From the IMG/VR virus record IMGVR_UViG_3300044796_000662, positions 62,001 to 126,000 of that record: 64,000 nucleotides of DNA, one strand, 5' to 3'. Below, piece by piece: positions 3,129 to 50,318 of the stretch. Numbering within the stretch: position 1 is the stretch's first letter; each line of letters begins with the position of its first letter. A program made the translations under genes and the position numbers. Under the pieces are notes generated by a model. That model did no database searches, was not told the DNA's origin, and saw only the letters and a list, made by a program, of their open reading frames with translations.

Positions 3129-3746
3129 ATGTTCTTTCGAGACGAAGACGACGATCTGCGCCGCACACCGCCTCGCAACCTCGGCATCGAGGCAGGCTTG
3201 AACGATCGTGAACGAGCGCAGGCGGCGTACGACCGGATGATGCGGAGCCACCCCGGCCAGATGATGGACTCCGGGGTCACCGTGGACGATGTGCTGAAGA
3301 AGCCGTTGCCAACCCCGCCACCTCGTCCTGCCAAGCCTGAAGAACCCACGGGTGCGATGGCCCGCTACACCGCTCGCATCGAGAAGTTCGAGAAAGACGG
3401 GCGTCCCATGCCCCGTCTTCGGCATCATGCCCTCTGGCTCCTGCACAACTGCGTGGCGCACCCACTTCTGGCCGTGACAGGCAAGAACGTTCAGCCGCTC
3501 GCCGTCGAGTTCCACGAGTTGACGAGCCAGTGGCTCAATCACAAGAGGGCCGCCAATGTTCCAGGTGGCCCCGTGGAACGCCGTGACCGCTTCCTCCAGA
3601 TCATGATGCCCCAGGTCGAGAACGAAGGCTCCTGGTTCATCCACAATGTCCTCGCCCACGTGGCCATCGGCCTCGTGCCCTGCAAGACCACCTTCGACCT
3701 GCACGACTGGAGCGCCGAAGTGATGGGCGTTCCTGGATGGGTCTGA
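3129..3746 (+). CDS. Hypothetical protein with tandem WxxHNxxAH...H(D/E) repeats
   Basis: Two internal repeats (WLLHNCVAHP, WFIHNVLAHV); CGGTGTA motif and AGGA SD upstream. Confidence 0.7.
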   Translation: MFFRDEDDDLRRTPPRNLGIEAGLNDRERAQAAYDRMMRSHPGQMMDSGVTVDDVLKKPLPTPPPRPAKPEEPTGAMARYTARIEKFEKDGRPMPRLRHHALWLLHNCVAHPLLAVTGKNVQPLAVEFHELTSQWLNHKRAANVPGGPVERRDRFLQIMMPQVENEGSWFIHNVLAHVAIGLVPCKTTFDLHDWSAEVMGVPGWV

Positions 3747-4432
3747 GCGAGAAGGTCGCCGCTGCCATCGAGGCCGCCGACTTCGTGGTGGGGTCGGACG
3801 AGTGCGGATACGGTGCCTGGGCCGGTCCCCTGGTCGTCTGCGCGGCCGTTCTGCCCAAGGCGTGGCCCTACGTCCACCTGGTCCGAGACTCGAAGCAGGT
3901 GCGGACTGAGGAGCAGCGCGAGGCCATTGCCAGGCAGATCCTCCCGCACCTCACCTACGAGATCCTGAGCGTCCCTCCCGAGGACATCGACCGCATCGGC
4001 GTGTCCAAGGTGCTGCCTTGGGCGCACGGCAAGGTGCTCGACCTGGTCATCGCGAAGCACGAGGCGTCGGGTGCCAGGGGCCAGCGTATCGTCATCGTAG
4101 ACGGCTCGCTGAGCATCCTCTACGGCGAAGGCCAGAAGGCGATCTCGGTCGTCAAGGGCGACTCCCTCGTCACAGCGGTGTCCGCGGCCAGCATCCTCGG
4201 CAAGGTCGCCAGAGACACGACCATGATCGCCTTGGCGGCCAAGTTCCCCGGCTACGGCTTCGAGAGCCATAAGGGCTACGGTGGCGGAGACGACCACGCG
4301 CACACCCTCGCGCTAGAGAAGCTCGGCCCCTGCGAGATCCACCGCAAGAGCTACAGCCCGGTCCGGAACCGGATGCAAGGCCCGAGCACGAGCCTCTTCG
4401 ATCTGGCGATGAGCGGAGAGCTGGACGACTAA
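3737..4432 (+). CDS. rnhB: Ribonuclease HII
   Basis: GSDECGYGAWAGP, DSKQ, IVDG, GDSLVTAVSAASILGKVARD, HKGYG, HRKSY. Confidence 0.92.
   Translation: MGLSEKVAAAIEAADFVVGSDECGYGAWAGPLVVCAAVLPKAWPYVHLVRDSKQVRTEEQREAIARQILPHLTYEILSVPPEDIDRIGVSKVLPWAHGKVLDLVIAKHEASGARGQRIVIVDGSLSILYGEGQKAISVVKGDSLVTAVSAASILGKVARDTTMIALAAKFPGYGFESHKGYGGGDDHAHTLALEKLGPCEIHRKSYSPVRNRMQGPSTSLFDLAMSGELDD
4388..4429 (+). repeat. Coding repeat TSLFDLAMSGELDD, copy 1 (copy 2 at 5309..5350)
   Basis: 14 identical codon meanings; every nucleotide difference is synonymous. Confidence 0.9.
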
Positions 4433-4434
4433 CG

Positions 4435-4441
4435 CGGTGTA
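4435..4441 (+). promoter_or_regulatory. Class-2 motif CGGTGTA (dam)
   Basis: 9 nt before GTG; the same motif occurs at 3108 before the gene at 3129. Confidence 0.65.
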
Positions 4442-4450
4442 GGGGGTCGC

Positions 4451-5362
4451 GTGAAACACGCGCACCCGTTCATCAAGTGGGTTGGCGGCAAGACGCAGCT
4501 ATTGCCCAAGCTCCTGGGACTGATCCCGAAAGAGATCAAGACCTACTACGAGCCGTTCCTGGGAGGGGGTGCTGTCTTCTGGGCCCTCGCCAAAGAGGGG
4601 CGCTTCGAGCAGGCCATACTCAACGACTGGAACGAGGAGCTGACCAACACATACAAGGTCGTCCGCGACAAGCCGGAGTCCCTCATCGAGCAGCTCACTA
4701 TCTTCGCGGACGAGTACAAGGCCAACCCAGAGGAGACATTCAGTACCATCCGCGCGTACGACCGCGAGGACATCACGAAGTACAACCCCGTGGTCCGCGC
4801 AGCACGGATGATCTTCCTCAACAAGACCTGCTACAACGGCCTGTACCGGGTGAACAAGGCGGGCCAGTTCAACAGCCCGTTCGGCGAGTTCAAGACTCCG
4901 CCAACCGTCTGTGATGCGCAGAATATCCGGGACTGCTCTGCGGTACTCGAAAAGGTACCAACCATCCACACGGGGGACTTCGCCCTGATCGCAGAGATGG
5001 CGACCGAAGGGGATGTGGTCTACTTCGATCCCCCGTACGAGCCCGTCTCGGACACGGCCGACTTCACCTCATACACGGAGGTTGGCTTCGGACGAGAAGA
5101 CCAGCTCCGGCTGGCCTCCCTGTTCAAGAAGCTCGCCGAGCGTGGCGTCCGGGTGCTCATGTCCAACCACGACACGCCGAGCATCCGCGAGATGTACGCG
5201 GGCTTCGAGGTCATCCAAGTTCCGGCCCGACGCAACATCAACAGCAAGGGCTCGAAGCGCGGGCACGTCATGGAGGTTGTTGTTGTGAGCCACCCGGTGC
5301 CGAAGGACACCAGCTTGTTCGACCTCGCGATGAGCGGGGAGCTGGATGATGCAGCACCATGA
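4451..5362 (+). CDS. dam: Dam-family (D12 class) N6-adenine DNA methyltransferase
   Basis: PFIKWVGGK, YYEPFLGGGAV, YNGLYRVNKAGQFNSPFG, YFDPPY; GTG start. Confidence 0.92.
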   Translation: MKHAHPFIKWVGGKTQLLPKLLGLIPKEIKTYYEPFLGGGAVFWALAKEGRFEQAILNDWNEELTNTYKVVRDKPESLIEQLTIFADEYKANPEETFSTIRAYDREDITKYNPVVRAARMIFLNKTCYNGLYRVNKAGQFNSPFGEFKTPPTVCDAQNIRDCSAVLEKVPTIHTGDFALIAEMATEGDVVYFDPPYEPVSDTADFTSYTEVGFGREDQLRLASLFKKLAERGVRVLMSNHDTPSIREMYAGFEVIQVPARRNINSKGSKRGHVMEVVVVSHPVPKDTSLFDLAMSGELDDAAP

Positions 5363-5715
5363 GGCGGTTCTATCTACGGCGTGACGAAGATCTGAGCGGG
5401 GTCTCAGGGAGCGGAGTCGTCGCCGAGGGTGTGGTGTTCTGGAACGGCAAGTGCGTGCTCAACTGGCGCACGAAGTTCACGAGCACGGCGCACTACGACG
5501 ACCTGGAGACGCTCTTGAACGTGCACGGGCACGGCGGCAAGACCCGGCTCATCTGGTTCGACGACAAGCCTTCGGAGCCGAAGGCCAGCATGGGCGAAGC
5601 CGCTCAACCGGCTTGCTCATTCTGTAGCAAGCTCGCGAACGAGGTGAAGCTCCTCACCTCCGGGTTGCCTTCGTCGCACGCGTACATCTGCGACGAGTGC
5701 AAGGCCAAGCCTTAG
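5359..5715 (+). CDS. Phage hypothetical domain fused to a ClpX-type C4 zinc finger
   Basis: C-terminal CSFC...YICDEC matches the ClpX zinc-binding pattern; ATGA overlap with dam. Confidence 0.72.
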   Translation: MRRFYLRRDEDLSGVSGSGVVAEGVVFWNGKCVLNWRTKFTSTAHYDDLETLLNVHGHGGKTRLIWFDDKPSEPKASMGEAAQPACSFCSKLANEVKLLTSGLPSSHAYICDECKAKP

Positions 5716-6089: not shown

Positions 6090-7382
6090 TCACTTCCCAC
6101 CCCGAGAGACGGGGATCTCCTCCCGGTAGGCCGTGTCGTCCTCGATGATCTGCGGCTTCTCCATCTCGAAGTACGCGCGGTACTCGTGGATGAAGGACCG
6201 CAAGGTCCCGTGTGACGTCAGGTCCCAGGAAAGGATCATCCCTCCGATCGCCGGCGCGCCGCCAAGCGACTTGGAGAAGGCGCTACCGCCACCTTGGAAC
6301 GTCGGACACGCCACCGCGTGGACTCCGCGCTCGTAGACGTGGCAGTACACGTGCCAGTGACCTGCCAGGAGGATGTTCGGCTTCTCGCCCGAAGCGTACT
6401 TCTCGACGTGCTTCTGGAGGGCGTACGAGCGGGCGTACGACACACCCGAACGCGGGTGCCAAAGGTGGACGATGGCGCCCTTGACCTTGAGGAAGGCCCC
6501 GCGGTTGCCGTAGAAGTGCAGGTCGTTGCGGCCGCGCTTGCGGAAGTAGCCGGTCAGGAAGTGGCCGACGTCCACGCCCGAGTTCTCGGTGAACGTGAAG
6601 TCGTGGTTGCCGGTGATGGCCCGGTAGTTGAGCCCCGGCAGTTGCGGTAGGGTCTCGAAGAGATCCCGCGCTTGGTCGTCCAGACCCACGTGCGATACCT
6701 CGAAGACGCCGTGCCTGTACATACCGTCGAGAACGTCGCCCGGGTGCAGGATCTCCCTCACACCTTGCTCGTAGGCGTAGTGGACGAACTCCTTGAGCTG
6801 CTCCCGCATGCAGTATTTGGAGCCGAGGTGCGTGTCCGAGATGACACCGACCTTCTGGCGCTCTCCGATGACCGGAGCGATGCCCACCTGGCGCACGCGC
6901 TCTTCAGGCTGCGCGGAGCGGATACCGACGTGGTTGTTCTCCACGTGCAGCCGGATCCCCATCTCCTTCGCTTGCTCGATGAGCCCGCGCGTCTTGGACG
7001 GAGACAGGTCCAGCTTGTCGCACAGGTCGGCGAAGACCACTGGACCACGCCGGGAGACCTGCACGAGCTTGTGTAGGGGACTTCCTGGGTCGAACCCGTT
7101 GTCGTCCTCGCCCTCGTCGTCATCCTCTTCGTCAGCGGCATTGTTGGGGCCGCTAGCGTTGGGGGACATTCTGTCCTGTTCATCGGACTCATCGTCCTCT
7201 GCACAGTACGTAGAGGGAGGTCCCAGCTCGTGTCTCAGGAACACTGACCTGAGCGCGTGTGCTGTTACATCACGGCCGATGACTCGTTGAATCTCTTCAA
7301 CTGCATCGCGAAAGCGCCCGACTGAGTATTTACGCAGGATCTCTTTGGCTCGCCTGAGATCCGCCCCCGTCCATACAACCAT
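6090..7382 (-). CDS. Calcineurin-like metallophosphoesterase with N-terminal HTH-like region
   Basis: ISDTHLGS, GDVLDG, GNHD, HP and AGHWH motifs. Confidence 0.88.
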   Translation of the reverse strand: MVVWTGADLRRAKEILRKYSVGRFRDAVEEIQRVIGRDVTAHALRSVFLRHELGPPSTYCAEDDESDEQDRMSPNASGPNNAADEEDDDEGEDDNGFDPGSPLHKLVQVSRRGPVVFADLCDKLDLSPSKTRGLIEQAKEMGIRLHVENNHVGIRSAQPEERVRQVGIAPVIGERQKVGVISDTHLGSKYCMREQLKEFVHYAYEQGVREILHPGDVLDGMYRHGVFEVSHVGLDDQARDLFETLPQLPGLNYRAITGNHDFTFTENSGVDVGHFLTGYFRKRGRNDLHFYGNRGAFLKVKGAIVHLWHPRSGVSYARSYALQKHVEKYASGEKPNILLAGHWHVYCHVYERGVHAVACPTFQGGGSAFSKSLGGAPAIGGMILSWDLTSHGTLRSFIHEYRAYFEMEKPQIIEDDTAYREEIPVSRGGK

Positions 7383-7486
7383 CGGAGTCTCCGGTTGGGT
7401 AGCGCCGTCGAGATCCGGATGCGGATTCGATCTAGCAAGGCCCTGGATTTACCGAGCCTTGCTAGATGAACCCTATAGAGAGAACC

Positions 7487-8578
7487 TTACGTGGGGTTCG
7501 AGTTCAGATACCCAATCCACTCGCAGACCCCCATTTTGATGTAGCGTTCGAGGTGGTGCAGTCCCTCTTCCGCTCCATGTGTGTCCCACAAGAGATGGGA
7601 GCCCACGCGAGAGATCTCCTCGGCGGAGTCGGGGTTCGCGTGCCACGAGCTGGGGGTCCATTCGATGGCCGGTCCGACAACGCTCGGAACACCTTCCGTA
7701 GCAGCGTCGGCGGTCACGATGTTGAACGTTTCCGTGAACGAGACCTGGAGGCAGAGGTCCATGTGCCCTACCGTGTGGCGGAACGAGGACCACTCCTCCC
7801 ACGGAACCTCAACGATCTTCGCCCAGCGCAGGCCGGAGAACATGTTGCGGACCGTGTGCAGAACGCTGCCGCCCTGCGAGTTCTCCTTGCGGCCGACGTT
7901 CATGTAGAACTCCAGATCGGAGCCCCGACGTTCGGCCATCATGAGAGCGGCCGCCGCAGCGGTCGAGTGGTTCTTCAAGAGGCGCAGCGCGCCGAAGCTG
8001 CCGATGCGCAGATTGCGGTGGCTGTGGCTCTCATCGCGCTTGCGGTTCACCCGCTCGACGTCGTAGAGGTTCGGCAGGTAGAGGCAGCGCGACGAGTACG
8101 TCTTCTGGAGGAACTCCTGGAGACGGCGCGTGTTGCAGGCAACGCTCAGATTGAGCTGCACATCCTGCAACTGGAGCATCTCGCGCAGAAGCTTCACTGC
8201 CCCCGGCTCCACCTGAAGGAACCCGATCTGGGAGTGCGACCGCACGATGAAGTGAACGTGGGGGAACTCCGTGAGAAGCTCCGCCATCTCGTTCGTCTTG
8301 ACCCAGAACGCCTCGATGAGGAGGTGTGAGGGCGCGTACTGTTGAAGAACCTTGCGCAGACCATCGACGTCCCAGACCGGGGCGATGTCGCAGCGAATGT
8401 GGTGCTTACGGAGCACCTTCGCCGTCTGCAACGCGTTGATACCGAGGCCGCGGTGACAGAAGTAACCGCCTCCCTCGCTGCCGTAGTCGTCGCCGTAATC
8501 CCCATACGACTTGAAGTCGCGGTAGCAGATGACGACGTGTGCTCGCTCTTTCTTGTGATCCAGATAGTGCATGTTCAT
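7487..8578 (-). CDS. GT-B fold (GT4-like) glycosyltransferase
   Basis: GSFGALRLLKN and DLCLQVSFTETFNIVTADAATEGVPSV (E-x7-D signature). By SD spacing the start may be ATG 8572. Confidence 0.75.
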   Translation of the reverse strand: MNMHYLDHKKERAHVVICYRDFKSYGDYGDDYGSEGGGYFCHRGLGINALQTAKVLRKHHIRCDIAPVWDVDGLRKVLQQYAPSHLLIEAFWVKTNEMAELLTEFPHVHFIVRSHSQIGFLQVEPGAVKLLREMLQLQDVQLNLSVACNTRRLQEFLQKTYSSRCLYLPNLYDVERVNRKRDESHSHRNLRIGSFGALRLLKNHSTAAAAALMMAERRGSDLEFYMNVGRKENSQGGSVLHTVRNMFSGLRWAKIVEVPWEEWSSFRHTVGHMDLCLQVSFTETFNIVTADAATEGVPSVVGPAIEWTPSSWHANPDSAEEISRVGSHLLWDTHGAEEGLHHLERYIKMGVCEWIGYLNSNPT

Positions 8579-8656
8579 CCTGCCGCCGGCCTTTGCCCTT
8601 AGGTCCCAGCGGCAACCTCGCTAAGGCGGTGGCAAAAGGTGAACTATCGCCAACAG

Positions 8657-9388
8657 TCAGGTGAGGAAACGAGCAGCGACACGCTCGGCGAGCCCAAGCG
8701 AAGCCGTTTTCGTTACGGCAGTTGACCCCTCGGTCGTGTAGGTGGATTCGAGCCCAGGATCGAGATAGTTGAAGCGAATCAAGTCCGCTTCCAGACCGAC
8801 CTCATCGGCCACCTTGTCGAGAGTCTTGAGGAACTCAGCGCGAAGCACCTTGGTACGAGCCCGGCGCTGCGTGGGAAGCGATTGCCCGGCCGACCGTGTT
8901 TCGTTCAGAGCCGAATGCATCCTGACGTTGGCGTTGTAGCCTCGGATGTCCTTCATCGAGAGCTTGTGCCGGCTCAAATAATCCCCGACCATCTCGGCCG
9001 TGACCCTGCCTGTGTCGTGGGCGAACAGCTCGTCGTTGTCGTCTTCTGTGGTCTCGAACGCCGTCTGAAGAGCCTGGATGATGGTCCGGTTCGCTATCGG
9101 CCGACGCTTGCCAGCGCTTCGGTAGGTCGCGGACCACTCTTCCTCCCCCAACTCGACGTTCTTCTTACGCCAACCCACGGGGTCCTCGTTGGTCTCCACC
9201 ATGAGGCCAACCGCCAAAGCCGTGAGGAACCTGTTCGGGTCTCCAGAACTCAAGTCGCGGCGGATGCGTCCCTGCATCGACTCGACCGCCGAACGAATGC
9301 GGCTCAAGCGTCGCGAGGTCGAGCGTGCCTTGCGCTCCTCGCTCATCATACCCTTGGCTTTCGCGCGTGCGAGAACGTTGAAGTTCAC
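8657..9388 (-). CDS. Degenerate type IB topoisomerase-like protein with C-terminal RVAARF tag
   Basis: MKDIRGYNA and VADEVG...NYLDP resemble TopIB KDFRT and VAxxLGxTxxxxxxSY(I/L)DP; GTG 9388 with GGAGG SD and GTGA overlap. Confidence 0.65.
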   Translation of the reverse strand: MNFNVLARAKAKGMMSEERKARSTSRRLSRIRSAVESMQGRIRRDLSSGDPNRFLTALAVGLMVETNEDPVGWRKKNVELGEEEWSATYRSAGKRRPIANRTIIQALQTAFETTEDDNDELFAHDTGRVTAEMVGDYLSRHKLSMKDIRGYNANVRMHSALNETRSAGQSLPTQRRARTKVLRAEFLKTLDKVADEVGLEADLIRFNYLDPGLESTYTTEGSTAVTKTASLGLAERVAARFLT

Positions 9389-11637
9389 GCTGTGGCCTCC
9401 TCGTCGGCGGGCGGCAAGCCCTCGGGAGCCTTGCCGGTCTTGATGACACTCAGGAGCCACTTCGAGGGCTCTTCCTTGAGGTGGCCAAGCACGAACGTTG
9501 TCAGCAACTCGGCGAACCATTCCATGTGGTTCTTGCGCGAGTAGGTCGTGGGGACCCAATCGTGGAGCTGCACTTCGTAGCGGTCGTCGGGCTTGCTGAT
9601 CTCTCCCTTCAGAGTCTCATAGACCTCGTGCCGTTCCTTCTCGACCTCTTTCAGCTCCCGCTCCTTCGCCTCGTCCTTCCCCACGTAAGTCAACGTGGAG
9701 GCAGACTCCGGCACGACAAGCGGGCCTGGCCCACGACGATACATCGAGCTGCGGAGGAGGTACTTCTCCGGCGCTTCGATGATCTCGATGAGGACGTCCC
9801 GGCCCTTCTTGCCGACGATCTTCCCCTTGATGTGGTACTGAACACCGTTTGACCAGGTGTCGTACTCGACCACGGTTCCCTTGCGTGGGAGCGGCCGGTG
9901 GATGTACTGCGTCTCTTCCAGTTCCTTGTAGCGCTTGTTGAGTACGTCGAGGCGCCGCTTCAGCACGTCTCGCGATCCCCCAGCTTGCGTGCGCTTCTGG
10001 CGCATGGCCCACATGAAGCGGGTCATGACCTCGACGTTGTTCTGGCCGCCCGGCACCACCTTGTCGTGGTAGTAGTGCGCCAGCTCGTGGATCAACGTGT
10101 GGAGGAAGCTTGCGTCCTCGTACGCCTTGGGTGCCACCTGGATCGCGGGTGGGCTCGAACCCATGTGGTACACGGCGGCTGCGTGCGAGCCGATGCCGCC
10201 ACCGTAGAGCGCCACAAGGATGTTGTCCTGAAGCGGCACCCCGGCGGCCTGGTACTTCTGCTCGGACTCCAGGAGTAGCTTGCCAACTTCTTCGAGGTGC
10301 TCGGCGTGCTGCTTGATGTAGCGCACCTTGAACCGACCGAACTGCTCCTCGTTGAACTGCACTGCCGCGTGCCGGTTCTTGAGGGCGTCGCGAAGGCTCT
10401 GGTCCGGGCCGATGCCGAGGTTGTTCCGAAGCGTGTTCGCCATCGAGTGGGCCTCGTTGTACGAGATCCCCATCTCCTGCATGATCTGACGGTCGCTCAT
10501 CCCTGACATGAACAGGTGGGCGAAGTCGTGGAGCTTCTTGTCGAAGGCCCCGCCACCCGTGCACTTGCAGCCGCCAGCGGTCTTGCCGGCCGCCTCGGCT
10601 TCCGCCTGTGCCTTGAGCGCGTTCTCCTTCACGTCTGCACGCCAGACCTTGTAGAGCCCGAAGACCTTGTTCTGCTTGCGGCCCTTGGGAATCGGCTCGA
10701 CTTCGATCGTGGGGTTGCCCCACTTGTCCGTACTGAAACCAACGATCTTGCCGCGCTTGTTCTTGTACTTGCCGTACAGAACGATGTCGCCCGGCTTGAA
10801 GTAGTTCGCGTACTTGAGTGCGACGCTGGCGGCGAGTCGGTCCATTCCCCCTTGCTCGTCGAAAAGTAGCTTAGCCTGCTCCATCCGGTCGTAGACGCCC
10901 TTGAGGATGGTCGCCTTGTTCTTCGGCGTCAGATGGTCCTCGATGACCTTCCACGTCGTGGACAGAAGCAGCGCGTAGTGCAGGAGTTTCTGATTGGGGT
11001 GGGGGTCCTTCTCGGCGCGCTCCCGTAGCATCACATGCATCTGGTCGCTCTTGCCGACGTTGTGGATCACCTCGTCGGCGATCTGCTGCATGAAGGCCCG
11101 GACCTCCGAGGGATCGTTGATGTATGGACCCCAGGCCGCCTCCCCCTTCTCCATGACTTCCTTGGGGGAGTAGGTCAGCCCTTTCATGTGATCCATCTCG
11201 GCGGCGTGCGTCGCCTCGTGGATCAGGAGTGAGTACAGGCCGTAGTTCAGGCACGTCTCAGCCCGGCACGAGTGAATGGGCTGGATGCGAAGAGGAGCCG
11301 TGAGGGACCCTTCTGTGTTCAGGTACTCGGCCGGAGTGAGCGCCCCGTTGATCTCCAGCTCGATCACCCCGGGACGTGTCCGGCCTCCGAGCACGGCAGC
11401 GTACTTGCCCTTAGCCTCACGAGCCGACACGTAAACGTCGTACCGAAGAGGGTAGCCTTTGACGGACTCGATCCGAAGCGGCTCTCCGCGGACGATCCCG
11501 TCCACATGCCCGATCGGCTCGTCTTGCTTCTGCCGGCGCAACCAGCGCACGATCTCCGGCACAAGCTGGCCTTCGACGAACTGCGCAATCGCGCCCTTGT
11601 CGAGCCAGATCGGTCGGGTAGCAGAGCGGTCCATCAT
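9385..11637 (-). CDS. Multidomain (polyvalent) protein: zincin, SH3-like, HTH, second zincin
   Basis: LIHEATHAAE and LIHELAHYYH...EWFAE motifs; the N-terminal module is paralogous to 26026..26754. Confidence 0.8.
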   Translation of the reverse strand: MMDRSATRPIWLDKGAIAQFVEGQLVPEIVRWLRRQKQDEPIGHVDGIVRGEPLRIESVKGYPLRYDVYVSAREAKGKYAAVLGGRTRPGVIELEINGALTPAEYLNTEGSLTAPLRIQPIHSCRAETCLNYGLYSLLIHEATHAAEMDHMKGLTYSPKEVMEKGEAAWGPYINDPSEVRAFMQQIADEVIHNVGKSDQMHVMLRERAEKDPHPNQKLLHYALLLSTTWKVIEDHLTPKNKATILKGVYDRMEQAKLLFDEQGGMDRLAASVALKYANYFKPGDIVLYGKYKNKRGKIVGFSTDKWGNPTIEVEPIPKGRKQNKVFGLYKVWRADVKENALKAQAEAEAAGKTAGGCKCTGGGAFDKKLHDFAHLFMSGMSDRQIMQEMGISYNEAHSMANTLRNNLGIGPDQSLRDALKNRHAAVQFNEEQFGRFKVRYIKQHAEHLEEVGKLLLESEQKYQAAGVPLQDNILVALYGGGIGSHAAAVYHMGSSPPAIQVAPKAYEDASFLHTLIHELAHYYHDKVVPGGQNNVEVMTRFMWAMRQKRTQAGGSRDVLKRRLDVLNKRYKELEETQYIHRPLPRKGTVVEYDTWSNGVQYHIKGKIVGKKGRDVLIEIIEAPEKYLLRSSMYRRGPGPLVVPESASTLTYVGKDEAKERELKEVEKERHEVYETLKGEISKPDDRYEVQLHDWVPTTYSRKNHMEWFAELLTTFVLGHLKEEPSKWLLSVIKTGKAPEGLPPADEEATA

Positions 11638-12743
11638 CGTCTCCTGACCAGGATGCGGTCGCCCTGGCTGTTCATAAGGGCGATCTGATCGTCTGACAGA
11701 CGGTTGGGGTGCGTCGCGTAGAGCGTCACGGGTCCCTTTCGAAAGACGATCTTCACGCGAACCTCGCGGCCGCCCTTGTCCTGCCAGACATCGGCGACCG
11801 TGCCCTTCTCGCGCGCCCCGATGTCCAGGTCCCGGGAGCCTTTGAGCACTTCGATCGTGTCACGAGGCTTGAGTGCGAACTCGCCTCGGATCTTGTTCGG
11901 ATCGTCCTGGACCTCGAAGAGCTTCTCGTGCTTGCGCTTCTGTTGGAGGATCTGGAACGAGGTCGGGATGGGATTCGAGGGCCGAAGGTGGATCCCGATG
12001 CGTGCCGTCTCGATCGCATCGTCCTTGCTCGGAGCATCATCAACGATGACCTTACCGTCGTTCGTGAGCACCTTCCAGACGTTACCCTCCTCCGTGACCC
12101 GCACGTCCACGCCGAGGATAGAGCCCTGGAAGAGCTTGGGGTGCACCTCGCGCAAATCAATGTCCTTGACCGGACGTTTGGCGACGTACTCCTTGGCGTC
12201 CTCGATCGACATGGGCACCATCTTGTGATCCGGGTGCACCACAAAGAGGTCCACGTCATGTACCCCCACGGTCATCGAGCACCCAAGCCCGAAGTTGCAG
12301 ATGTTGGCGTCGATCACCGCAGGCTGCTTCTCGGGGCCGTTCGGGTCGAACTCCACCTTGGGGTCGAGATGGTGAAACGTGGTGCCGATCGCGTCGTACT
12401 TCGCGAGGAAGAGGTCGTCCCCGTAGCGGCCGCCCCGCAGCCGGTTGCCGACCTCGATGACCTCCGTAACGTTCTCGGCCCACGATGCTCCGTGAGCACG
12501 TTCAGCGGGAGTCGAGTAGGTGCCGCCCGTGATCTGGCCAGTCTTGAGGATGCGGACCAGCTCCTCCCCGTCGAAGATGCGGTAGAGGGTGAAGCTGGAA
12601 TCGAACTCGGCGACGATCTGGTTCGGCAGAGACGTGAACCGCTGGCGGATCTTGTTCGTCGCGTCACGGTCGATGAGGATGCGGACCGTGCGCGCGTAAC
12701 GCACTCGAAAGCGCGTCAGAACACGGGTAGTCAGCGCGTCCAT
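11634..12743 (-). CDS. Hypothetical protein with RV-x-x-R-F leader, possibly ADP-ribosyltransferase-like
   Basis: 369 aa; MDALTTRVLTRFRVRYA leader; LYR...E...I..TG...GASW pattern. The ORF is solid, the function is tentative. Confidence 0.6.
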   Translation of the reverse strand: MDALTTRVLTRFRVRYARTVRILIDRDATNKIRQRFTSLPNQIVAEFDSSFTLYRIFDGEELVRILKTGQITGGTYSTPAERAHGASWAENVTEVIEVGNRLRGGRYGDDLFLAKYDAIGTTFHHLDPKVEFDPNGPEKQPAVIDANICNFGLGCSMTVGVHDVDLFVVHPDHKMVPMSIEDAKEYVAKRPVKDIDLREVHPKLFQGSILGVDVRVTEEGNVWKVLTNDGKVIVDDAPSKDDAIETARIGIHLRPSNPIPTSFQILQQKRKHEKLFEVQDDPNKIRGEFALKPRDTIEVLKGSRDLDIGAREKGTVADVWQDKGGREVRVKIVFRKGPVTLYATHPNRLSDDQIALMNSQGDRILVRRR

Positions 12744-26777: not shown

Positions 26778-28061
26778 CTACGCGCGGGCCTTCAGAGTCC
26801 GACGCCCATCGACGATGATCGGCACTCCCTTACCCGTGATCACGTCGGCCGTGATGCGGATGCTCGCGATGTCCATGCTTGGACCATCGTAGGCGTAGGG
26901 TGCGAGAGTCTCCTCCAGGATCGAACGGAGCCCACGCGCTCCCGTGGGTCGGCGCTTCGCCTCCTGGCCGATGGCCAGGAGAGCATCCGTGTCGAACTGC
27001 AAGTCGATGTCGTCCATGGCGAAGAGCGCCTGGTACTGCTTCACGAGGGCGTTCTTCGGCTCCGTGAGCACCTTGACCATGTCCTCGTCAGACAGCTCCA
27101 GCGTGCTCGTAACGATGGGCAGACGGCCGAGCATCTCGGGGATGATCCCGAACTCCAAGATGTCCTCGCCCTTGACCTCCGTGTAGACCTCGTTGAGCGT
27201 GAGCTTGCGCCGCTTCGTGTCCTCCGAGCCGAAGCCGAGCCGCGAGGACTTGTTCACCCGCTGCTCTACCACCTCGTCGATGCCCGCGAAGCTGCCCGCA
27301 GCAACGAACAGGATGTTGGTCGTATCGAGCACGTCCACGTTCGAGCGCACCTCGCCGTTGGGGCCTACAGACGTCACGGACACGTTCTTGCCCATCCCAC
27401 GCGTGACGGGCACAGAGCAGCCTTCCAAGGTCCGCAGCATGCCTTGCTGGACGCCTTCGCCCGTGATGTCGCGGTAACCGGAGGCGGAACGTCCGCTCTT
27501 GCGGGCGATCTTGTCGAATTCGTCGAGCAAGATGATGCCCCACTCGGCGCGCTGGATGTCCCCGCCGGCGTTCTGGACGAGCCCGCGAAGCATGTCGTCC
27601 GCGTCGTCGCCCACGTAGCCTTGCTGCGTCAGCCGGGTGCAGTCCTGCGTGTAGAACGGGACCTTCAGAAGCTCGCTGATCGCCCTGAACGTCTCGGTCT
27701 TGCCCGAGCCAGTGGGGCCGAGGATCAGCATGTTGGACTTCTGGACCTTGATCGAGCCCGCCTTCTTGGCCCGAGCCGCGTCCCTACGCTTGAAGTGGTG
27801 GTAGACCGCGGTGGAGACCGCCCTCTTCAGCCTTTCCTGCGCGATGATGTGCTCGTCGAGGTACGCCTTGATCTGATGGGGCGTCCCAAGGACGGGCTCC
27901 CGCTTCTTGTCGCCCTTGGGGGCCGACTGCTCGATGAGGTTCGAGGCTCCTTCCACGCACGTCTCGCAGATGTAGACGCCGTTGCCCTTGATCAGGCGGT
28001 TGTTGGGGACCTCGTTCTTCTCGGACCCACAGAAAGAGCACACCTCGTGGTCGGTCGGCAT
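26778..28061 (-). CDS. clpX: ATP-dependent Clp protease ATPase subunit ClpX
   Basis: CSFC..C..C zinc domain, GPTGSGKT, GYVG pore loop, DEFDK, GEGVQQ, LGF loop, TGARGLR. Confidence 0.93.
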   Translation of the reverse strand: MPTDHEVCSFCGSEKNEVPNNRLIKGNGVYICETCVEGASNLIEQSAPKGDKKREPVLGTPHQIKAYLDEHIIAQERLKRAVSTAVYHHFKRRDAARAKKAGSIKVQKSNMLILGPTGSGKTETFRAISELLKVPFYTQDCTRLTQQGYVGDDADDMLRGLVQNAGGDIQRAEWGIILLDEFDKIARKSGRSASGYRDITGEGVQQGMLRTLEGCSVPVTRGMGKNVSVTSVGPNGEVRSNVDVLDTTNILFVAAGSFAGIDEVVEQRVNKSSRLGFGSEDTKRRKLTLNEVYTEVKGEDILEFGIIPEMLGRLPIVTSTLELSDEDMVKVLTEPKNALVKQYQALFAMDDIDLQFDTDALLAIGQEAKRRPTGARGLRSILEETLAPYAYDGPSMDIASIRITADVITGKGVPIIVDGRRTLKARA

Positions 28062-38330: not shown

Positions 38331-41270
38331 TCAAGCGCGGGGGTACGGATAGATCGCCCCATCGCTCAGGTTGAGGTCCCTCAAGAGGCTTGCGAGCCGC
38401 TCTGGCATGACCTTCACCTGAAGACCCGGGTCGATGAGGATGTTGCCCACTGCATCCGTGAGGAAGAGGATCTTCCCCATGTCCGGGTCGCTCGCATCGG
38501 AGCACGCGGAGCGCACTTGCCTGACGGTCTGCCTCGTGAGCACGCTGACCTTCATCCAGACGATAGACGTGGAGGCCACGTCATCGCGTTTGATGGTCGT
38601 CTTGGGGGTCTCCATCCGGGGGGAGGGCGGCGGCCGCGGGGCCTCCGGAGTCGGCGCTACCTGAATCGAGACGTCCTCTACTGTGCTCACGGGGGCAGAG
38701 ACCGCGTGTCCAGCGGCCCCGTTCGTGTCCCCTCCGTTCTTGGGCGGTTCATGGCCGCCACCCTGCCATCCGGGGATGAAGAGCCCTTCAAGCCATGCGG
38801 GAACCCGGTGGTAGATCCGATCTCCCACCACAATCTCGATGTCCTTCGAGATGCCGCAGTCGCAGTTGGCCGCCCCCTCGCAGCCCTCGAAGTGCAGCCA
38901 GGCTCCTTCAGACCACTGCGTTGTCTTGTTCTCGTACTTCTTGTTCTTGCCGGCGTAGTTCTTCTTGCCCGAGTACGGCTTGCCGTGCATGAGCATCCCG
39001 TAGTCGTACTCACCGGCCCACGTCGTTCCGATGAGCGGCTCGACGATGAGGGGCACGCGCCAGACGGGCGAGTACGGGGGACGTGCCAAGCCTGACGGCG
39101 AGGCCATGACCCGGACGATGACCGCAAGGGCCTCCTGCACGCGAGCGTGCTTGATCTCGAACACGATTTCGTCGTGCACCGTGAGCAGCATGCGAACCGA
39201 GTCGTCTCCGCCGCCCTGCTTGAGCCAGCCGTGCTTGTAGAACTCCTTGCAGAGCAGCACGAGGCTGATCTTCATGATGTCCGCGCCGGTTCCCTGGATG
39301 GGGAAGTTCGTGCTCTTGCGCTCGCACGCCGCTTGGACGGCCTTATCCGGGTTGTCGATGTCCGGGATGGCCACCCAGCGCTGGAGAGCCGTGTACACGC
39401 CCTTGTCCTTGCGGACCTTGACGTGCTGACCCTTGATCCAGTTGGCGAAGGTCGGGACCGCCTTGTCGAACGCGCCTTTGCGGCGGGAGGCTTCCAGCTT
39501 GTCGCAGCCGGTCGCCCGCATGATCGCAGCCGGCCCGCCTCCGTACAAGAGCGCGAAGTTGGCGATCTTGCCCATCTTGCGCAGCTCCTTCTGCCGGTCC
39601 TTCGACTCCTTGTCGAACTCCGGGAAGAACGCGCGAGCCGTGATGGTGTGCAGGTCCCCGTCGCCTTCGAGGAACTCCTTGATCCAGACCATCTCGTTCG
39701 AGACGTTGGCTGCGATACGAAGCTCCTGACCGGCGTAGTCGGCCTTGAGCATCGTGTAGCCCTCGCGGGCCTCGAAGCACTTGCGCAGCTCCGAGGTCGA
39801 GGGGATGCCGTGGATGGGGATGCCCGACATCCCCTGATCTGCCTCTCCTGCGGGCGCAGAGAAGCGTCCCGTAGCGGCTCCAGTCTGCTTGAACTGGAAG
39901 CGCATCTCCGAGCGCTCGTCCACGTTGTTGTACATGTTCTGGAGGTACGTGGAGTCGAGCTTCTCGAACTCGCGCCACTTCACGATCCACTTGAGCACCT
40001 CGGGGACTCCCGGGTTCTCTTTGACGAGCGTCTCCAGCGTCTCGGCGTCCGTCTTGAACTGCTTGCTCGCCTCGTTGATGGGCGGCTTGGGGCTGATGTT
40101 GAGCCCCTTGTCCGAGAAGAGGAACTCGGAGAGCACCTTCGTACTGGCCGGGTCGAAGTTGAAGTAGCCCTTCGCTTCCGCAAGGTTCTTGATCTTGGCG
40201 AGGATCTCGTCGCGCTTCTTCGCGTTCTCGTCCATCGCGGCCTTGATGCGGTCGCGGTTGACCCGCACGCGAGGGCGTTCCATCCAACGGCCAGCGCACG
40301 CTGTCTGCTTCTCGACGCGATAGGTGAAGAGGTGCTTGTCGCGCACCTGCGCAAGCGTGAACGAACGCTTCTCATGTGAACGTGGCTGCGTGCAAAGCAG
40401 GTACGTGCAGATGGCATCCGAGCACGCGTACTTGAGGCAGCCGGGTTCATCCGGGGACAGGCGACCGAACTCGATCTTCGTCCCCTTGATGGGGAAGAGA
40501 TCTTTCAGCTCGATCATCTCGTACGGGTTGTTATCGGGGTCCCGCAGAAGCTCGAACGCCTTCCACTTGAGGCCAAGCTTCTTGTCGTCCGAGAAATGCG
40601 TGTAGTGGAAGAGGTTGCCGTCCTCAAAGCTCTCCGGATGCCACCAGTCGATGCCCGTGACCGGGTAGAGGAACTCGTGATCGAACTTGGCGTTCCAGAA
40701 GTACAGGAGCACCTTGGGGGGCTCCAACCACTCCTTGGCGGAGAGCGGGTCCTTCTCCATCGCCTCCGGCTTCATCACCGGCTGCGCGGCTCGACAGAGA
40801 CGTGTGATGGACGCCTCGGCACGCTCGACGGGCAGGTTCAAGCTCGGGCCGCCGTCATTCGGATTGTGACGCACGGGCGCGTAGAACCCGGACTTGCCGT
40901 CGTAGGAGAGGCAGAACCCCACGATCTTGTGCTTCGTGTATGGCTTGCCGCTCTCGTCGTAGAAGATGCGGTTGTCGAGACCCTCGGTTTCCAGGTCGAG
41001 AGCGCACTCCTTGGCGGCGATGGCCGCGTCCACGATCTGGTCAAGCTCGTCAGCCGTCCGGACGAGCTTGAACGTGTGGTGCTTCATCCAGGGCCGGGTG
41101 ATGTCCGGGACCGCACGCTCATTCTGGAGGCCCGCTGCCGCCATGAAGTCCTCCGGGGACTCCTCGGGCTCCGTCGAGATGATGGACGTAGCCGGCTTCA
41201 CCACCGGCCCTGGGCTCACTTCCGTAGAGAGCCCGAGCATCTCGTCAATGTCGTCGATCTCGTTGGGCAT
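38331..41270 (-). CDS. polA: Family A DNA polymerase with 3'-5' exonuclease
   Basis: LDLET, WNAKFD, YACSD; motif A ADYAGQELR, motif B RKMGKIANFALLYG, motif C TVHDEIV. Confidence 0.95.
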   Translation of the reverse strand: MPNEIDDIDEMLGLSTEVSPGPVVKPATSIISTEPEESPEDFMAAAGLQNERAVPDITRPWMKHHTFKLVRTADELDQIVDAAIAAKECALDLETEGLDNRIFYDESGKPYTKHKIVGFCLSYDGKSGFYAPVRHNPNDGGPSLNLPVERAEASITRLCRAAQPVMKPEAMEKDPLSAKEWLEPPKVLLYFWNAKFDHEFLYPVTGIDWWHPESFEDGNLFHYTHFSDDKKLGLKWKAFELLRDPDNNPYEMIELKDLFPIKGTKIEFGRLSPDEPGCLKYACSDAICTYLLCTQPRSHEKRSFTLAQVRDKHLFTYRVEKQTACAGRWMERPRVRVNRDRIKAAMDENAKKRDEILAKIKNLAEAKGYFNFDPASTKVLSEFLFSDKGLNISPKPPINEASKQFKTDAETLETLVKENPGVPEVLKWIVKWREFEKLDSTYLQNMYNNVDERSEMRFQFKQTGAATGRFSAPAGEADQGMSGIPIHGIPSTSELRKCFEAREGYTMLKADYAGQELRIAANVSNEMVWIKEFLEGDGDLHTITARAFFPEFDKESKDRQKELRKMGKIANFALLYGGGPAAIMRATGCDKLEASRRKGAFDKAVPTFANWIKGQHVKVRKDKGVYTALQRWVAIPDIDNPDKAVQAACERKSTNFPIQGTGADIMKISLVLLCKEFYKHGWLKQGGGDDSVRMLLTVHDEIVFEIKHARVQEALAVIVRVMASPSGLARPPYSPVWRVPLIVEPLIGTTWAGEYDYGMLMHGKPYSGKKNYAGKNKKYENKTTQWSEGAWLHFEGCEGAANCDCGISKDIEIVVGDRIYHRVPAWLEGLFIPGWQGGGHEPPKNGGDTNGAAGHAVSAPVSTVEDVSIQVAPTPEAPRPPPSPRMETPKTTIKRDDVASTSIVWMKVSVLTRQTVRQVRSACSDASDPDMGKILFLTDAVGNILIDPGLQVKVMPERLASLLRDLNLSDGAIYPYPRA

Positions 41271-41700
41271 CGTGCTCCTCCTGAACCAGGACCACGTACA
41301 CCCCTTCGCGCCAGCTCTTAACGATCTCTGACATCAATCGTCGCACTTCTGGGTCTTCCGACCCATCCGGCTCGTAGCACCACGGCATACGCTTGGCCGT
41401 TGGGAAACACCGGGCCTTATCGTAGAAAGGGCAGCGGTCGCGCAGTGTACATACACGCGCACTCTCAGGCAGCTTGATGAGGGCGCCCTGAGGTGGGAGC
41501 CCCAGCGACTTGACGAGTGGGCTCGTCCAACCGCGCAGAGCATGCTCGATCGTGTCCTTGGGAACGGTGGTGAGCAGGCTTGCGATCTCGTTACCCTGAA
41601 GAGGGCGCCAGTTCTGCTCCCAGACGCCCCCCTCATCGTAGATGAGGTACAGCTCCAGGAACCCCATCTCGGTTGTCGAGACCCTCAGTCGCCTGGACAC
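41245..41700 (-). CDS. Hypothetical protein with C-x5-C-x7-C-x9-C cluster
   Basis: Lies between the primase domain and polA and overlaps both; start uncertain. Confidence 0.62.
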   Translation of the reverse strand: MSRRLRVSTTEMGFLELYLIYDEGGVWEQNWRPLQGNEIASLLTTVPKDTIEHALRGWTSPLVKSLGLPPQGALIKLPESARVCTLRDRCPFYDKARCFPTAKRMPWCYEPDGSEDPEVRRLMSEIVKSWREGVYVVLVQEEHDAQRDRRH

Positions 41701-42329
41701 GACCGCACTACCTCGCCGATCTTGTCGAGCACCTGGCGAAGCACGACCTTCGCCTTCTCGTAGTCGATTTTGCGCTCATCGAGTCGATGACGTAGCCGGT
41801 CGAGAATGACCCCGAGCTTGAGGAATGGCACCATCTCGAAGTTGTGCTTCGCGCTCCGTAGCCGTTTCTCGCACGCCTCGAACAGAGTGGCGACTTCCAG
41901 AACGAGCGGGTCCTCCTCCGGCTCGTAGTCCCCGGACACGCCTTCCGGCATGGGAGGAGGCACGATGCCGTAGGCAGACTCGATGTCACGCAAGACCGCG
42001 GCGAACTTGAGGTCTTCGCGGCCATCGAACTTCTTCCAAAGTCCGATGGCGTCCCAGTTCTTCTGACAGACGAAGCACCAGACGTGACTCGGGCTGCGCG
42101 CCGATGCCTCGTAGACGCGAGCGGACGGCTTCGTGTCCCGACCATGGAAGGGGCAGGAGATCTGCTCCTCACGGCCGCCGTACTTGAGCCGGATGCCGTT
42201 GCGTGTGAGCACGTCGTGCGCCGTGACCGTCTGGTGGATGGTCGCCACCCGCTCGGCAATCCACTGACGCCAGACGTCATGACGCTCGTTACGCCGGATG
42301 TTCTGATCGAAGACGTTAGCCACGGTCAC
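41685..42329 (-). CDS. Stand-alone primase CHC2 zinc-binding domain protein
   Basis: SCPFHGRDTKPS...WCFVC...DAI; no TOPRIM domain. Confidence 0.82.
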   Translation of the reverse strand: MTVANVFDQNIRRNERHDVWRQWIAERVATIHQTVTAHDVLTRNGIRLKYGGREEQISCPFHGRDTKPSARVYEASARSPSHVWCFVCQKNWDAIGLWKKFDGREDLKFAAVLRDIESAYGIVPPPMPEGVSGDYEPEEDPLVLEVATLFEACEKRLRSAKHNFEMVPFLKLGVILDRLRHRLDERKIDYEKAKVVLRQVLDKIGEVVRSCPGD

Positions 42330-43798: not shown

Positions 43799-44688
43799 CG
43801 TGAACCCCTCTTGCTCTTGAACTTGAACTTCTTGGGCGCTTTGGGCGCATCCAGGTCCGCGAGGTCAGGTCGGCCGAGGTCATCTCCCCCGGACGCTGGC
43901 TCCGGATCTGGATCGGACGATGGTTCCCACTCCTCGACGCTCAGAGCCGCATCCGGGGGTGCAGAGACAAGGACGTTCTGCGGTCCAGAGTAGACGTACG
44001 GCGCAGGCCGGTCATCTTGCTCCTCGGAGGGCGTCGAGGTGCTGGGCACATCGAGCACTTCGAAGTGCGAGAAGATGTAGTCGGCGACATCCTCGCTGTA
44101 CGAGTGATGGCCGACAACGAATGGGTAGTCTGCCTTGTCCACGATCCACGTCGCCTTGTGGGCGACTTCGCGAAGCATGAGTGCTTCCTTCAACGCGCCG
44201 GCCATCGCGACGTTCTTGTGGCCCAGATACCCGAGAAGAAGAATCACGAGGTCGTGGTCGCAGACCAGATCTGAGAGCGAGTTGTACGACTTGGTCGTCT
44301 CACGCTCTTCCTTCGGCTTGACCCGTGCCGACTCGTTGCCGACGAACACATTCTTGATCCTCTCGTCGGTGACGATGAGAAAGCGGAACATCAACCCCTT
44401 GCAGATGAGCGCGTAACGGAAGTGAGCGATCATGTCGCTCCACCGGCCGCGCAAGAAGAGGTTGTCCGCAGTCTTGTCATCGAGCGGCGGATCATCTGGG
44501 ACTGGCCCACGCACGAACAGCGGCGAGGACTGGATCTTCCTGGCGCGAGCGATCTCCGGCCCCAAGTGCTGCCGCATCATCCGGCGCCGTGCGCAACTGC
44601 ACAGGCGACTGTGCATGTCGTCCACACGGATCTTCCCTCGCCCGTTGCAAATCTCGCAGACTGTCTCTCGCTCGATAGGGGGCGCCAT
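43795..44688 (-). CDS. DnaC/helicase-loader-like protein with Zn finger and degenerate P-loop
   Basis: CEICNGRG...CSC, DLVIL, position next to the helicase; no GKT. Confidence 0.55.
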   Translation of the reverse strand: MAPPIERETVCEICNGRGKIRVDDMHSRLCSCARRRMMRQHLGPEIARARKIQSSPLFVRGPVPDDPPLDDKTADNLFLRGRWSDMIAHFRYALICKGLMFRFLIVTDERIKNVFVGNESARVKPKEERETTKSYNSLSDLVCDHDLVILLLGYLGHKNVAMAGALKEALMLREVAHKATWIVDKADYPFVVGHHSYSEDVADYIFSHFEVLDVPSTSTPSEEQDDRPAPYVYSGPQNVLVSAPPDAALSVEEWEPSSDPDPEPASGGDDLGRPDLADLDAPKAPKKFKFKSKRGSR

Positions 44689-50313: not shown

Positions 50314-50318
50314 CTCCG

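Follow-up and report, generated by a model that had tools for sequence, protein, structure and literature searches.

A C-terminal peptide shared by RNase HII and a Dam-type methylase of an uncultured huge phage, and its predicted docking to a phage-encoded sliding clamp

We analysed a window of 64,000 nucleotides (positions 62,001 to 126,000 of the 362,937-bp record IMGVR_UViG_3300044796_000662) from an uncultured huge phage. Unless stated otherwise, coordinates are those of the window. A tightly packed string of genes on the plus strand includes rnhB (3737-4432, 231 aa), which encodes RNase HII (PF01351, E 3.9e-23), and dam (4451-5362, 303 aa, GTG start), which encodes a D12-class N6-adenine DNA methylase (PF02086, E 1.3e-65 over the whole profile) with a DPPY motif, the target-site specificity of which was not examined. 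The acidic residues D21, E22, D122 and D142 of RNase HII are invariant in 55 homologues. The catalytic domain runs to about residue 210 and is followed by a variable linker and a C-terminal tail. The upstream gene (3129-3746, plus strand, 205 aa) is of unknown function, its end overlaps the rnhB start, and its homologues stand upstream of rnhB in the related huge-phage contigs L082 and L178. The downstream gene (5359-5715, plus strand, 118 aa) has an ATG that overlaps the dam stop codon (ATGA), and encodes an N-terminal domain of phrog_7499 and a C-terminal ClpX-type C4 zinc finger. Its homologues follow dam in L178 (Pfam Acb5 and zf-C4_ClpX) and in the related contig L102 (Acb5).

The last 14 codons of rnhB (4388-4429, plus strand) encode TSLFDLAMSGELDD, and the same 14 residues are encoded in dam (5309-5350, plus strand). 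The original prediction, that two unrelated enzymes carry an identical peptide maintained at the protein level, was confirmed by the sequence, with two small corrections. RNase HII ends with the peptide, but the Dam ORF runs three codons further (AAP, 5351-5359, then the stop at 5360-5362), and the two 42-nt copies, which had been described as differing at 7 of 14 codons, differ at 8 nucleotides in these 7 codons. All 8 differences are synonymous (8.67 synonymous and 33.3 non-synonymous sites, pS 0.92, pN 0). The chance that 8 random differences are all synonymous is about 3e-6, and none of 200,000 random 8-base mutants kept the peptide. The 60 nt upstream of the two copies are unrelated (30% identity), so this is not a recent DNA duplication.

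A search of the full genome for similar tails had been proposed beforehand as a check. A six-frame fuzzy search of the whole record, allowing up to 6 substitutions in 14, detected only the two copies, and regular-expression and charge screens of all C-termini detected only the two known carriers. A looser search added only a dNMP kinase with SLFDY 30 residues from its end, a motif that is not conserved in the complete 411-kb genome of a relative (G002). No third carrier was found in a scan of the whole of G002, and no similar motif was found in the polymerase, the ligase or the clamp loader of the phage, which should also use a clamp. A degenerate DNA pattern for FDLA..GELDD searched in JGI metagenomes returned only the already known contig. 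Close relatives were absent from IMG/VR when searched with the single protein, and from GenBank phages.

Related huge-phage contigs keep the rnhB-dam neighbourhood and the two tails change together, for instance LFDLATSGELDD with SLFDLAMELD, and FDFSTLGGDDE with FDFSTLGV. In the genome studied here, RnhB ends in TSLFDLAMSGELDD and Dam in TSLFDLAMSGELDDAAP; the corresponding RnhB and Dam tails are NGLFDLATSGELDD and ESLFDLAMELD in L082, HFDFSTLGGDED and KFDYSQLGE in L083, SFDFSTLGGDDE and KFDFSTLGV in L084, and SFDYSALGGDDD.. and RFDCSTLGE in L102. In a permutation test, same-genome tail pairs score higher than shuffled pairs (p = 2e-4 for 10 genomes, and 57 of 5040 permutations, p = 0.011, with one genome per tail type). 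Most of the 120 listed RNase HII homologues end in a hydrophobic-acidic tail behind the conserved HRKSYxPI, while more distant phage RNase HII proteins lack it. Free variation of the tail among homologues had been named as an outcome that would count against the proposal: the tails do differ strongly between sub-clades (W-x-x-L, DPLFII and D-I-M-E-L-L types), although the paired tails change in step. One close relative (L178) has lost the Dam tail (its Dam ends in QATEVLLAAATP), and in more distant relatives only RNase HII carries such a tail. An AlphaFold2 model of RNase HII (mean pLDDT 94) shows a confident catalytic domain, followed by 21 residues (211-231) over which pLDDT falls from 76 to 52, with a short helix at 220-224 and no confident packing on the domain.

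The window encodes a T7-like replisome. It includes a family A (T7/Pol I-like) DNA polymerase (38331-41270, minus strand, 979 aa), which is the only polymerase family detected, a DnaG-type CHC2 zinc-ribbon protein, the primase part (41685-42329, minus strand, PF01807), a DnaB-like replicative helicase (42326-43798, minus strand, 490 aa, PF03796), and a DnaC/IstB-like AAA+ protein that is a likely helicase loader (43795-44688, minus strand; its Atlas structure and feature neighbours are IstB_IS21 and Bac_DnaA families). A complete ClpX homologue (26778-28061, minus strand, 427 aa; PF06689, PF07724 and PF10431) has a zinc-binding domain, a GYVG pore loop and an LGF loop. The helicase ends in ...QDETDLLNNV and belongs to a second shared-tail family, ..D(F/T)x(D/E)L(L/F)(D/N)N(V/L), also found at the ends of two unrelated proteins of this genome, g252 and g253. 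These tails are conserved and change in step in G002.

Searches for a recognisable clamp or for another polymerase in the 363-kb record were negative. These comprised PF00712, PF02768, TIGR00663, PCNA_N (PF00705), the gp45 C-terminal domain (PF09116), Pol III alpha, family B polymerase, the single-strand-binding protein family PF00436, and phmmer with RB69 gp45, gp44 and gp62. Pfam, PHROGs and Atlas searches of unknown ORFs near the polymerase detected no clamp or SSB either. Elsewhere the same genome encodes clamp-loader subunits (PF13177 at 5e-37, phrog_5846 'clamp loader', and the delta C-terminal domain PF21694). A clamp candidate was found only through a 13.6-bit TIGR00663 hit in another relative (G013), which led to a 432-aa protein in the phage genome (P0242, at 244949-246259 on the minus strand of the genome record, G000) that Pfam and TIGR00663 do not recognise. 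Its 23-member family profile hits only beta clamps in the PDB (1vpk at 2.8e-9 and 8dt6 at 1e-4). Its model (pLDDT 92) has the three-domain clamp fold and matches bacterial beta clamps (Foldseek 2e-17, TM 0.67/0.77, all top 50 hits are clamps). This clamp was detected in 12 of 16 records searched, including every clade record at least 58% complete, and is absent from the two non-clade phages, whose RNase HII has no such tail. We could not link clamp sequences to the FDFSTLG clade, as they lay on other short contigs.

Co-folding of the tail with candidate phage clamps had also been suggested in advance as a test. Two copies of the clamp were co-folded with RnhB residues 208-231, and the peptide was placed in the cleft between domains II and III, with a score of 0.57 (median of three runs) against a best control of 0.01. 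The three runs share 90-95% of their contacts. On the clamp these are residues 190-203, 268-276, 377-389 and 427-432 (domain II, the connector, domain III and the C-terminus), and on RnhB residues 219-222, 224-227 and 229-231. In the calibration of the method, its mark was reached by 58 of 80 solved complexes and 2 of 110 mismatched pairs, but at 0.60 or under it was reached by only 7 of those 80 and by both mismatches that passed, and the result is therefore classed as 'weak support'. The peptide is also shorter than anything in the calibration, and the model may simply reproduce solved complexes of beta clamps with peptides. The contacts lie at the expected cleft, but whether the tail occupies this pocket is left undecided, and no binding has been measured for the tail peptide (GPSTSLFDLAMSGELDD) or for either enzyme. 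The Dam tail, the second tail family and swapped tail-clamp pairs were not co-folded with the clamp. The contact columns K190, G200, A203, K268, Y271, Y272, F427, P429 and S430 are highly conserved in the clamp family. The one clade genome without tails on either enzyme (G009) deviates at Y272V, P429M and S430A and has a gap at 387. However, the clamp of L178 (P0244), the relative that has lost the Dam motif, has contact residues identical to those of the phage studied here.

Taken together, we propose with moderate confidence that the tail is a lineage-specific short linear docking motif, placed at the end of a flexible, poorly conserved linker on two otherwise unrelated enzymes. Its most likely role is to tether both to the hydrophobic cleft between domains II and III of a divergent, previously unrecognised beta sliding clamp that the phage itself encodes and loads with its own clamp-loader subunits. 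Clamps on phage DNA would then concentrate RNase HII (ribonucleotide and primer-junction incision) and the Dam-type methylase on that DNA. The analysis establishes that the peptide is identical in the two enzymes and kept by selection, that the two tails change together in relatives, that the tail is modelled with low confidence, and that the phage encodes a clamp and a clamp loader, whereas the contact between tail and clamp is a prediction only, and the biological purpose, post-replicative processing and methylation of phage DNA, is inferred. The original interpretation, a new clamp- or replisome-docking peptide coupling ribonucleotide removal and protective methylation to the phage fork, is thus partly supported: a selected peptide behind a variable linker on two DNA enzymes is well supported, and the clamp idea gained concrete support from the phage clamp and its loader and, weakly, from the co-folding, but 'protective methylation' and 'fork' remain inference.

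Other partners are not excluded. The tail could dock to another part of the T7-like replisome, such as the family A polymerase, the DnaB-like helicase or an unrecognised single-strand-binding protein, in the way that the acidic C-terminal tails of T7 gp4 and gp2.5 bind T7 DNA polymerase. Hydrophobic-acidic C-terminal tails are clearly used in this genome, and RNase HII works with Pol I-type polymerases in ribonucleotide excision repair (PMC11253446). We consider this unlikely, given that the RnhB/Dam tail is a different motif from the helicase/g252/g253 tail, which suggests a different receptor, and that co-folding placed it in the clamp cleft with controls near zero, although neither tail was co-folded with the polymerase. 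On the other hand, the second tail family (..DFTDLFDNL) contains a DLF core and could be the real clamp motif. The host beta clamp was ranked low as a partner, without being tested, because the tails differ strongly between sub-clades while the phages carry their own clamp; the host was not identified. A further and less likely possibility is recognition by the phage ClpX, giving timed unfolding or degradation of both enzymes and resembling the C-terminal ClpX-binding peptide of the adaptor SspB, which also sits behind a flexible linker. ClpX is present in 15 of 15 clade records and in 0 of 21 other RNase HII-bearing phages, whose enzyme lacks the tail; it keeps the GYVG and LGF loops, so it could use a host ClpP, and the small protein with a ClpX-type zinc finger is translationally coupled to dam, a gene order conserved in L178. 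However, this correlation is confounded by phylogeny, as the clamp and the long polymerase show the same clade-wide pattern, and G009 has an intact ClpX zinc-binding domain but no tails. ClpP is encoded in only 2 of 15 records. The very end of the tail is variable and acidic (DD, DE, AAP, LD, GV), unlike the ClpX C-terminal degrons LAA or RRKKAI; binding to the zinc-binding domain was not assayed, and neither this domain nor the 118-aa zinc-finger protein was co-folded with the tails.

It is also doubtful that the tail acts within its own protein, as an acidic DNA-mimicking autoinhibitory segment that folds back on the DNA-binding surface of each enzyme, or as a sorting signal for a compartment or for the virion. 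The tails are acidic and sit on DNA-binding enzymes, acidic tails of phage single-strand-binding proteins act in this way, and no experiment excludes either form of this reading. However, an identical 14-mer on two unrelated folds argues for one shared partner acting in trans, the model shows no confident packing of the tail on RNase HII, and only two proteins in 363 kb carry the tail, which is few for a sorting signal. A neutral relic of duplication or gene conversion is very unlikely. The two copies are only 921 bp apart in adjacent genes, but synonymous sites are saturated while no amino acid differs, the flanks are unrelated, and matching tail pairs persist in relatives whose RNase HII and Dam are only about 52-74% identical to those studied here.

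The tail resembles bacterial beta-clamp-binding motifs, such as the C-terminal tail of E. coli Pol IV, in being a short peptide at the end of a flexible segment of a DNA enzyme, with a DnaN-type clamp and a loader encoded in the same genome; the contact at the cleft between domains II and III plus the clamp C-terminus is predicted only, with weak support from co-folding. It does not fit the consensus QL[SD]LF or QLxLxL, as there is no glutamine; LFDLAM and FDFSTL share only the hydrophobic spacing, LFDLAM fitting the alternating pattern of QLVLGL. It also differs in that an acidic run follows the motif, that the clamp is of a phage-specific family, and that the carriers are RNase HII and a Dam-type methylase. 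The consensus is often poorly conserved (PMC2705854). The closest known peptide is the clamp-binding C-terminus of RB69 DNA polymerase gp43 (...KKASLFDMFDF), which was solved bound to a hydrophobic crevice of its clamp (PMC2705854). SLFDM matches SLFDL over five residues, and the tail is likewise a C-terminal hydrophobic-acidic peptide of the SLFDMFDF or SLDFLF type. However, the T4/RB69 clamp gp45 is a trimeric PCNA-like ring, no gp45, gp44, gp62 or PCNA homologue was detected here, and the carrier there is the polymerase, not repair or modification enzymes. In archaea and eukaryotes, PIP boxes recruit RNase HII/H2 and DNMT1 to PCNA, following the same logic of tethering ribonucleotide removal and DNA methylation to the sliding clamp by short terminal motifs, and acidic residues next to the box can contribute to binding (PMC2705854, on Pfu RFC-L). 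The tail does not fit the PIP box (Qxx[LIM]xx[FY][FY]), the clamp family is different and the origin is independent. The T7 gp4 and gp2.5 system also has a T7-like replisome in which unrelated proteins share interchangeable hydrophobic-acidic tails, but T7 has no clamp, and in this genome that description fits the second tail family better.

Clamp-docking peptides are a known principle, but tethering of RNase HII and a Dam-type methylase to a bacterial-type clamp is not known. E. coli RNase HII does not bind the beta clamp (PMC11253446), which also counts against the proposed role, and our literature searches found no report of a clamp-binding Dam. If confirmed, this would be a phage parallel to PCNA-bound RNase H2 and DNMT1. 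A more tentative possibility, which we consider less likely than not, is that this clade of huge phages runs a private, two-channel 'tail code' for its replisome, in which one class of C-terminal peptide (on RNase HII and Dam) addresses the cryptic phage-specific beta clamp and a second class (on the DnaB-like helicase and two unrelated proteins) addresses another hub, probably the T7-like polymerase. Both codes would co-evolve with their receptors, which would keep the phage machinery separate from host clamp clients. Following the tail also exposed a beta-clamp family that sequence models miss, with 154 representatives among 1.84 billion proteins. A comparative study reported that jumbo phages with a T7-like polymerase have a clamp loader but no detectable clamp (PMC7824862), and this family may fill that gap.

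The + strand ORF at 3737-4432 of the window encodes a 231-aa RNase HII (PF01351, E 3.9e-23) and the + strand ORF at 4451-5362 encodes a 303-aa D12-class N6-adenine methylase (PF02086, E 1.3e-65). The observation that these two enzymes share a 14-residue C-terminal peptide is confirmed, as RNase HII ends with ...GPSTSLFDLAMSGELDD and the methylase with ...KDTSLFDLAMSGELDDAAP. The 14-mer is identical in both proteins, although, contrary to the original prediction, it is not the very end of the methylase. The two 42-nt stretches (4388-4429 and 5309-5350) differ at 8 bases in 7 codons, and all differences are synonymous. With 8.67 synonymous sites, pS is 0.92, which is saturated, while pN is 0, and the chance of this pattern is about 3e-6. 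The 60 nt before each copy are unrelated. The synonymous divergence exceeds what random codon choice would give, and selection against a 42-bp direct repeat flanking dam, which could delete the gene by recombination, is a possible cause. A search of the full genome for further tails of this kind had been proposed as a test, and no third copy was detected in the 362,937-bp record (G000), even allowing 6 substitutions. The record is an IMG/VR virus record with 62.6% G+C and an estimated completeness of 76%. A dNMP kinase (PF21448; G000 50189-50917, minus strand, outside the window, locus L177:2192-2917) carries PDSLFDYHLL about 30 residues before its C-terminus and is a possible weak third carrier, but the motif is not conserved in the homologue from the IMG/VR relative G002.

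A tail that proved freely variable in homologues had been named in advance as evidence against a docking function. We examined the 120 best RNase HII homologues, which mostly come from metagenomic contigs, many of them 200-620 kb long. Nearly all continue past the conserved HRKSYxPI with a variable linker and a short hydrophobic-acidic tail, for example FDFSTLGGDDE, LFDLATSGELDD, DLFDMAMSGDLD, W-x-x-L-acidic, D-I-M-E-L-L-D-S-L-E and DPLFIIS. More distant phage RNase HII proteins stop right after the domain. Seven related contigs that carry both genes keep rnhB and dam within about 2 kb of each other, sometimes with a CYTH gene or small ORFs between them. In an eighth related contig (L101), no dam is found nearby and rnhB is followed by CRISPR-Cas genes (Cas3-like, Cas_GSU0053, Cas_GSU0054; 6733-12696, + strand). 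In another relative (L104), a 184-aa ORF between rnhB and dam (6956-7510, + strand) ends with ..LKSRATFEFPSE, which matches the RNase HII tail of a further relative (L103, ..LLKTSETATFEFPSE). A GIY-YIG gene lies nearby, so an inserted mobile gene may have captured the old rnhB 3' end.

The tail is old, and the tails of the two enzymes change together. In our genome the RNase HII tail TSLFDLAMSGELDD is paired with the Dam tail TSLFDLAMSGELDDAAP, whereas in the related contigs the pairs are GLFDLATSGELDD with SLFDLAMELD (L082), HFDFSTLGGDED with KFDYSQLGE (L083), SFDFSTLGGDDE with KFDFSTLGV (L084) and SFDYSALGGDDD.. with RFDCSTLGE (L102). A permutation test of same-genome against shuffled tail pairs gives p = 2e-4 for 10 genomes and, with one genome per tail type, 57 of 5040 permutations, although this test is not corrected for shared ancestry within a type. 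Dam homologues from other sub-clades carry related ends, such as QDAFNLAMELG.., ..YEML.. and ..MFEGLPEE... The picture is not uniform. In L178, the next closest relative after L082, RNase HII keeps SDLFDMAMSGDLD but Dam ends with QATEVLLAAATP, and in the IMG/VR relatives G001, G002, G004 and G005, Dam ends in a zinc ribbon instead. An AlphaFold2 model of RNase HII built on 55 homologues is confident for the catalytic domain (mean pLDDT 94), but confidence drops from 76 to 52 over residues 211-231. A short helix is modelled at 220-224 and does not pack confidently on the domain, which is the usual picture of a linker with a short linear motif.

We examined the replication genes of the phage. 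The window encodes a 979-aa family A polymerase, a DnaG zinc ribbon, a DnaB-like helicase, a DnaC/IstB-like protein and an SNF2 helicase. No DnaN, PCNA, gp45, Pol III alpha, family B polymerase or canonical SSB is detectable by family models. A second replication block lies outside the window, at 238-263 kb of the record. It includes a clamp-loader pair (260317-262276, minus strand, locus L163) that comprises a clamp-loader AAA+ subunit (PF13177, 5e-37; phrog_5846, 'clamp loader of DNA polymerase') and a delta-like subunit (PF21694), next to an NAD-dependent ligase, a RecD2-like helicase and a class II ribonucleotide reductase. An RtcB ligase, confirmed by Pfam, and a GroEL-like gene, judged from its N-terminus only, both lie a few kb away.

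A 13.6-bit TIGR00663 hit in the relative G013 led to a strong homologue in our genome (phmmer 5.5e-67) at 244949-246259 on the minus strand, outside the window (locus L164:6952-8247). The protein is 432 aa counted from MIKFSV, Pfam finds nothing in it, and TIGR00663 misses it. It is flanked by SbcD-like, PD-(D/E)XK, SMC-like and Toprim genes. A profile of 23 family members hits only beta sliding clamps in the PDB (1vpk, 2.8e-9; 8dt6, 1e-4; 7rzm, 2.5e-3), and the AlphaFold2 model (pLDDT 92, pTM 0.89) matches bacterial beta clamps in all top 50 Foldseek hits (E 2e-17, TM 0.67/0.77), which is the evidence that it is a divergent beta clamp. The family is small, with 154 representatives at E <= 1e-3 among 1.84 billion proteins, and has no tblastn match in GenBank phages. 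It is conserved across the clade, being present in 12 of 16 records searched, including every clade record at least 58% complete. It is missing from the two fragments (43-44% complete) and from the two non-clade phages, whose RNase HII lacks a tail. A comparative study reported that jumbo phages with a T7-like polymerase have a clamp loader but no detectable clamp (PMC7824862), and this family is a candidate for that 'missing' clamp.

Co-folding the tail with candidate phage clamps had also been suggested beforehand, and we co-folded two copies of this clamp with RNase HII residues 208-231. Scores were 0.58, 0.53 and 0.57 (median 0.57), and the best control scored 0.01. The mark of the method was reached by 58 of 80 solved complexes and by 2 of 110 mismatched pairs, but at 0.60 or under it was reached by only 7 of those 80 and by both mismatches that passed, and the result is thus classed as weak support. 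In addition, the peptide is shorter than anything in the calibration, and a pass may reflect memory of solved clamp-peptide complexes. The three runs share 90-95% of their contacts. These involve peptide residues 219-222, 224-227 and 229-231, and clamp residues 190, 198, 200-201, 203, 268, 270-273, 276, 377, 387, 389, 427, 429-430 and 432, which lie in domain II, the II-III connector, domain III and the C-terminus, where clients bind beta clamps. Whether the tail occupies this pocket is left undecided by these scores. The contact columns K190, G200, A203, K268, Y271, Y272, F427, P429 and S430 are highly conserved in the family. G009, the one clade genome with no tail on either enzyme, deviates at Y272V, P429M and S430A and has a gap at 387, although this is a single case.

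The closest known match to the tail is the end of the RB69 DNA polymerase, ...KKASLFDMFDF, an 11-residue peptide that was solved bound to its clamp (PMC2705854). SLFDM aligns with SLFDL, but the RB69 clamp is a gp45-type trimer, which is absent here. Compared with the bacterial consensus QL[SD]LF or QLxLxL, the tail lacks the Q and fits only the hydrophobic spacing, and the same review notes that this consensus is often poorly conserved. The E. coli RNase HII is reported not to bind the beta clamp and instead to ride with RNA polymerase (PMC11253446). Our literature searches found no paper linking a Dam-type methylase to a clamp-binding motif.

Other receptors were considered. The DnaB-like helicase (window 42326-43798, minus strand; ..QDETDLLNNV) and two proteins unrelated to each other apart from the tail, g252 (..GDFTELLDNV) and g253 (..NDFTDLFDNL), encoded outside the window (G000 251754-252620 and 252761-253603, both minus strand), share a second C-terminal tail that resembles the T7 gp4 and gp2.5 tails. 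It is conserved and changes in step in G002, where the homologues end with ..EYLEAMNLPI, ..NYTDMLEQV and ..ALSFLENL. Tail-based addressing is thus general in this genome, the RNase HII and Dam tail may address another replisome hub, and the second tail, which contains DLF, could be the true clamp motif. The phage ClpX (window 26778-28061, minus strand) is another possible partner. It is a full homologue with zinc-binding domain, GYVG and LGF loops, but without the RKH loop sequence of E. coli ClpX, and is present in 15 of 15 clade records and in 0 of 21 others, while ClpP is encoded in only 2 of the 15. A small protein whose start overlaps the dam stop (window 5359-5715, + strand) combines an N-terminal domain (phrog_7499; homologues carry the precomputed Pfam label Acb5) with a ClpX-type zinc finger, and the order of dam followed by this gene recurs in L178 and L102. 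However, G009 keeps ClpX without tails, and the tail ends do not resemble known degrons. Autoinhibition within the protein, or sorting, is supported neither by the model nor by the small number of carriers, and a neutral duplication is excluded by the comparison of the two 42-nt stretches.

Taken together, the interpretation in the original prediction, a new clamp- or replisome-docking peptide, is partly supported. It is very likely that the tail is a selected docking peptide acting in trans. That its receptor is the phage's own beta clamp is the best single explanation, but only somewhat more likely than not; while the shared peptide itself is read directly from the sequence, its binding is predicted and was not measured. 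Across the whole record, GATC is twice as frequent as expected from base composition (2493 sites, O/E 2.0), so potential Dam sites are abundant if the enzyme is GATC-specific, whereas CTAG is strongly avoided (O/E 0.16).
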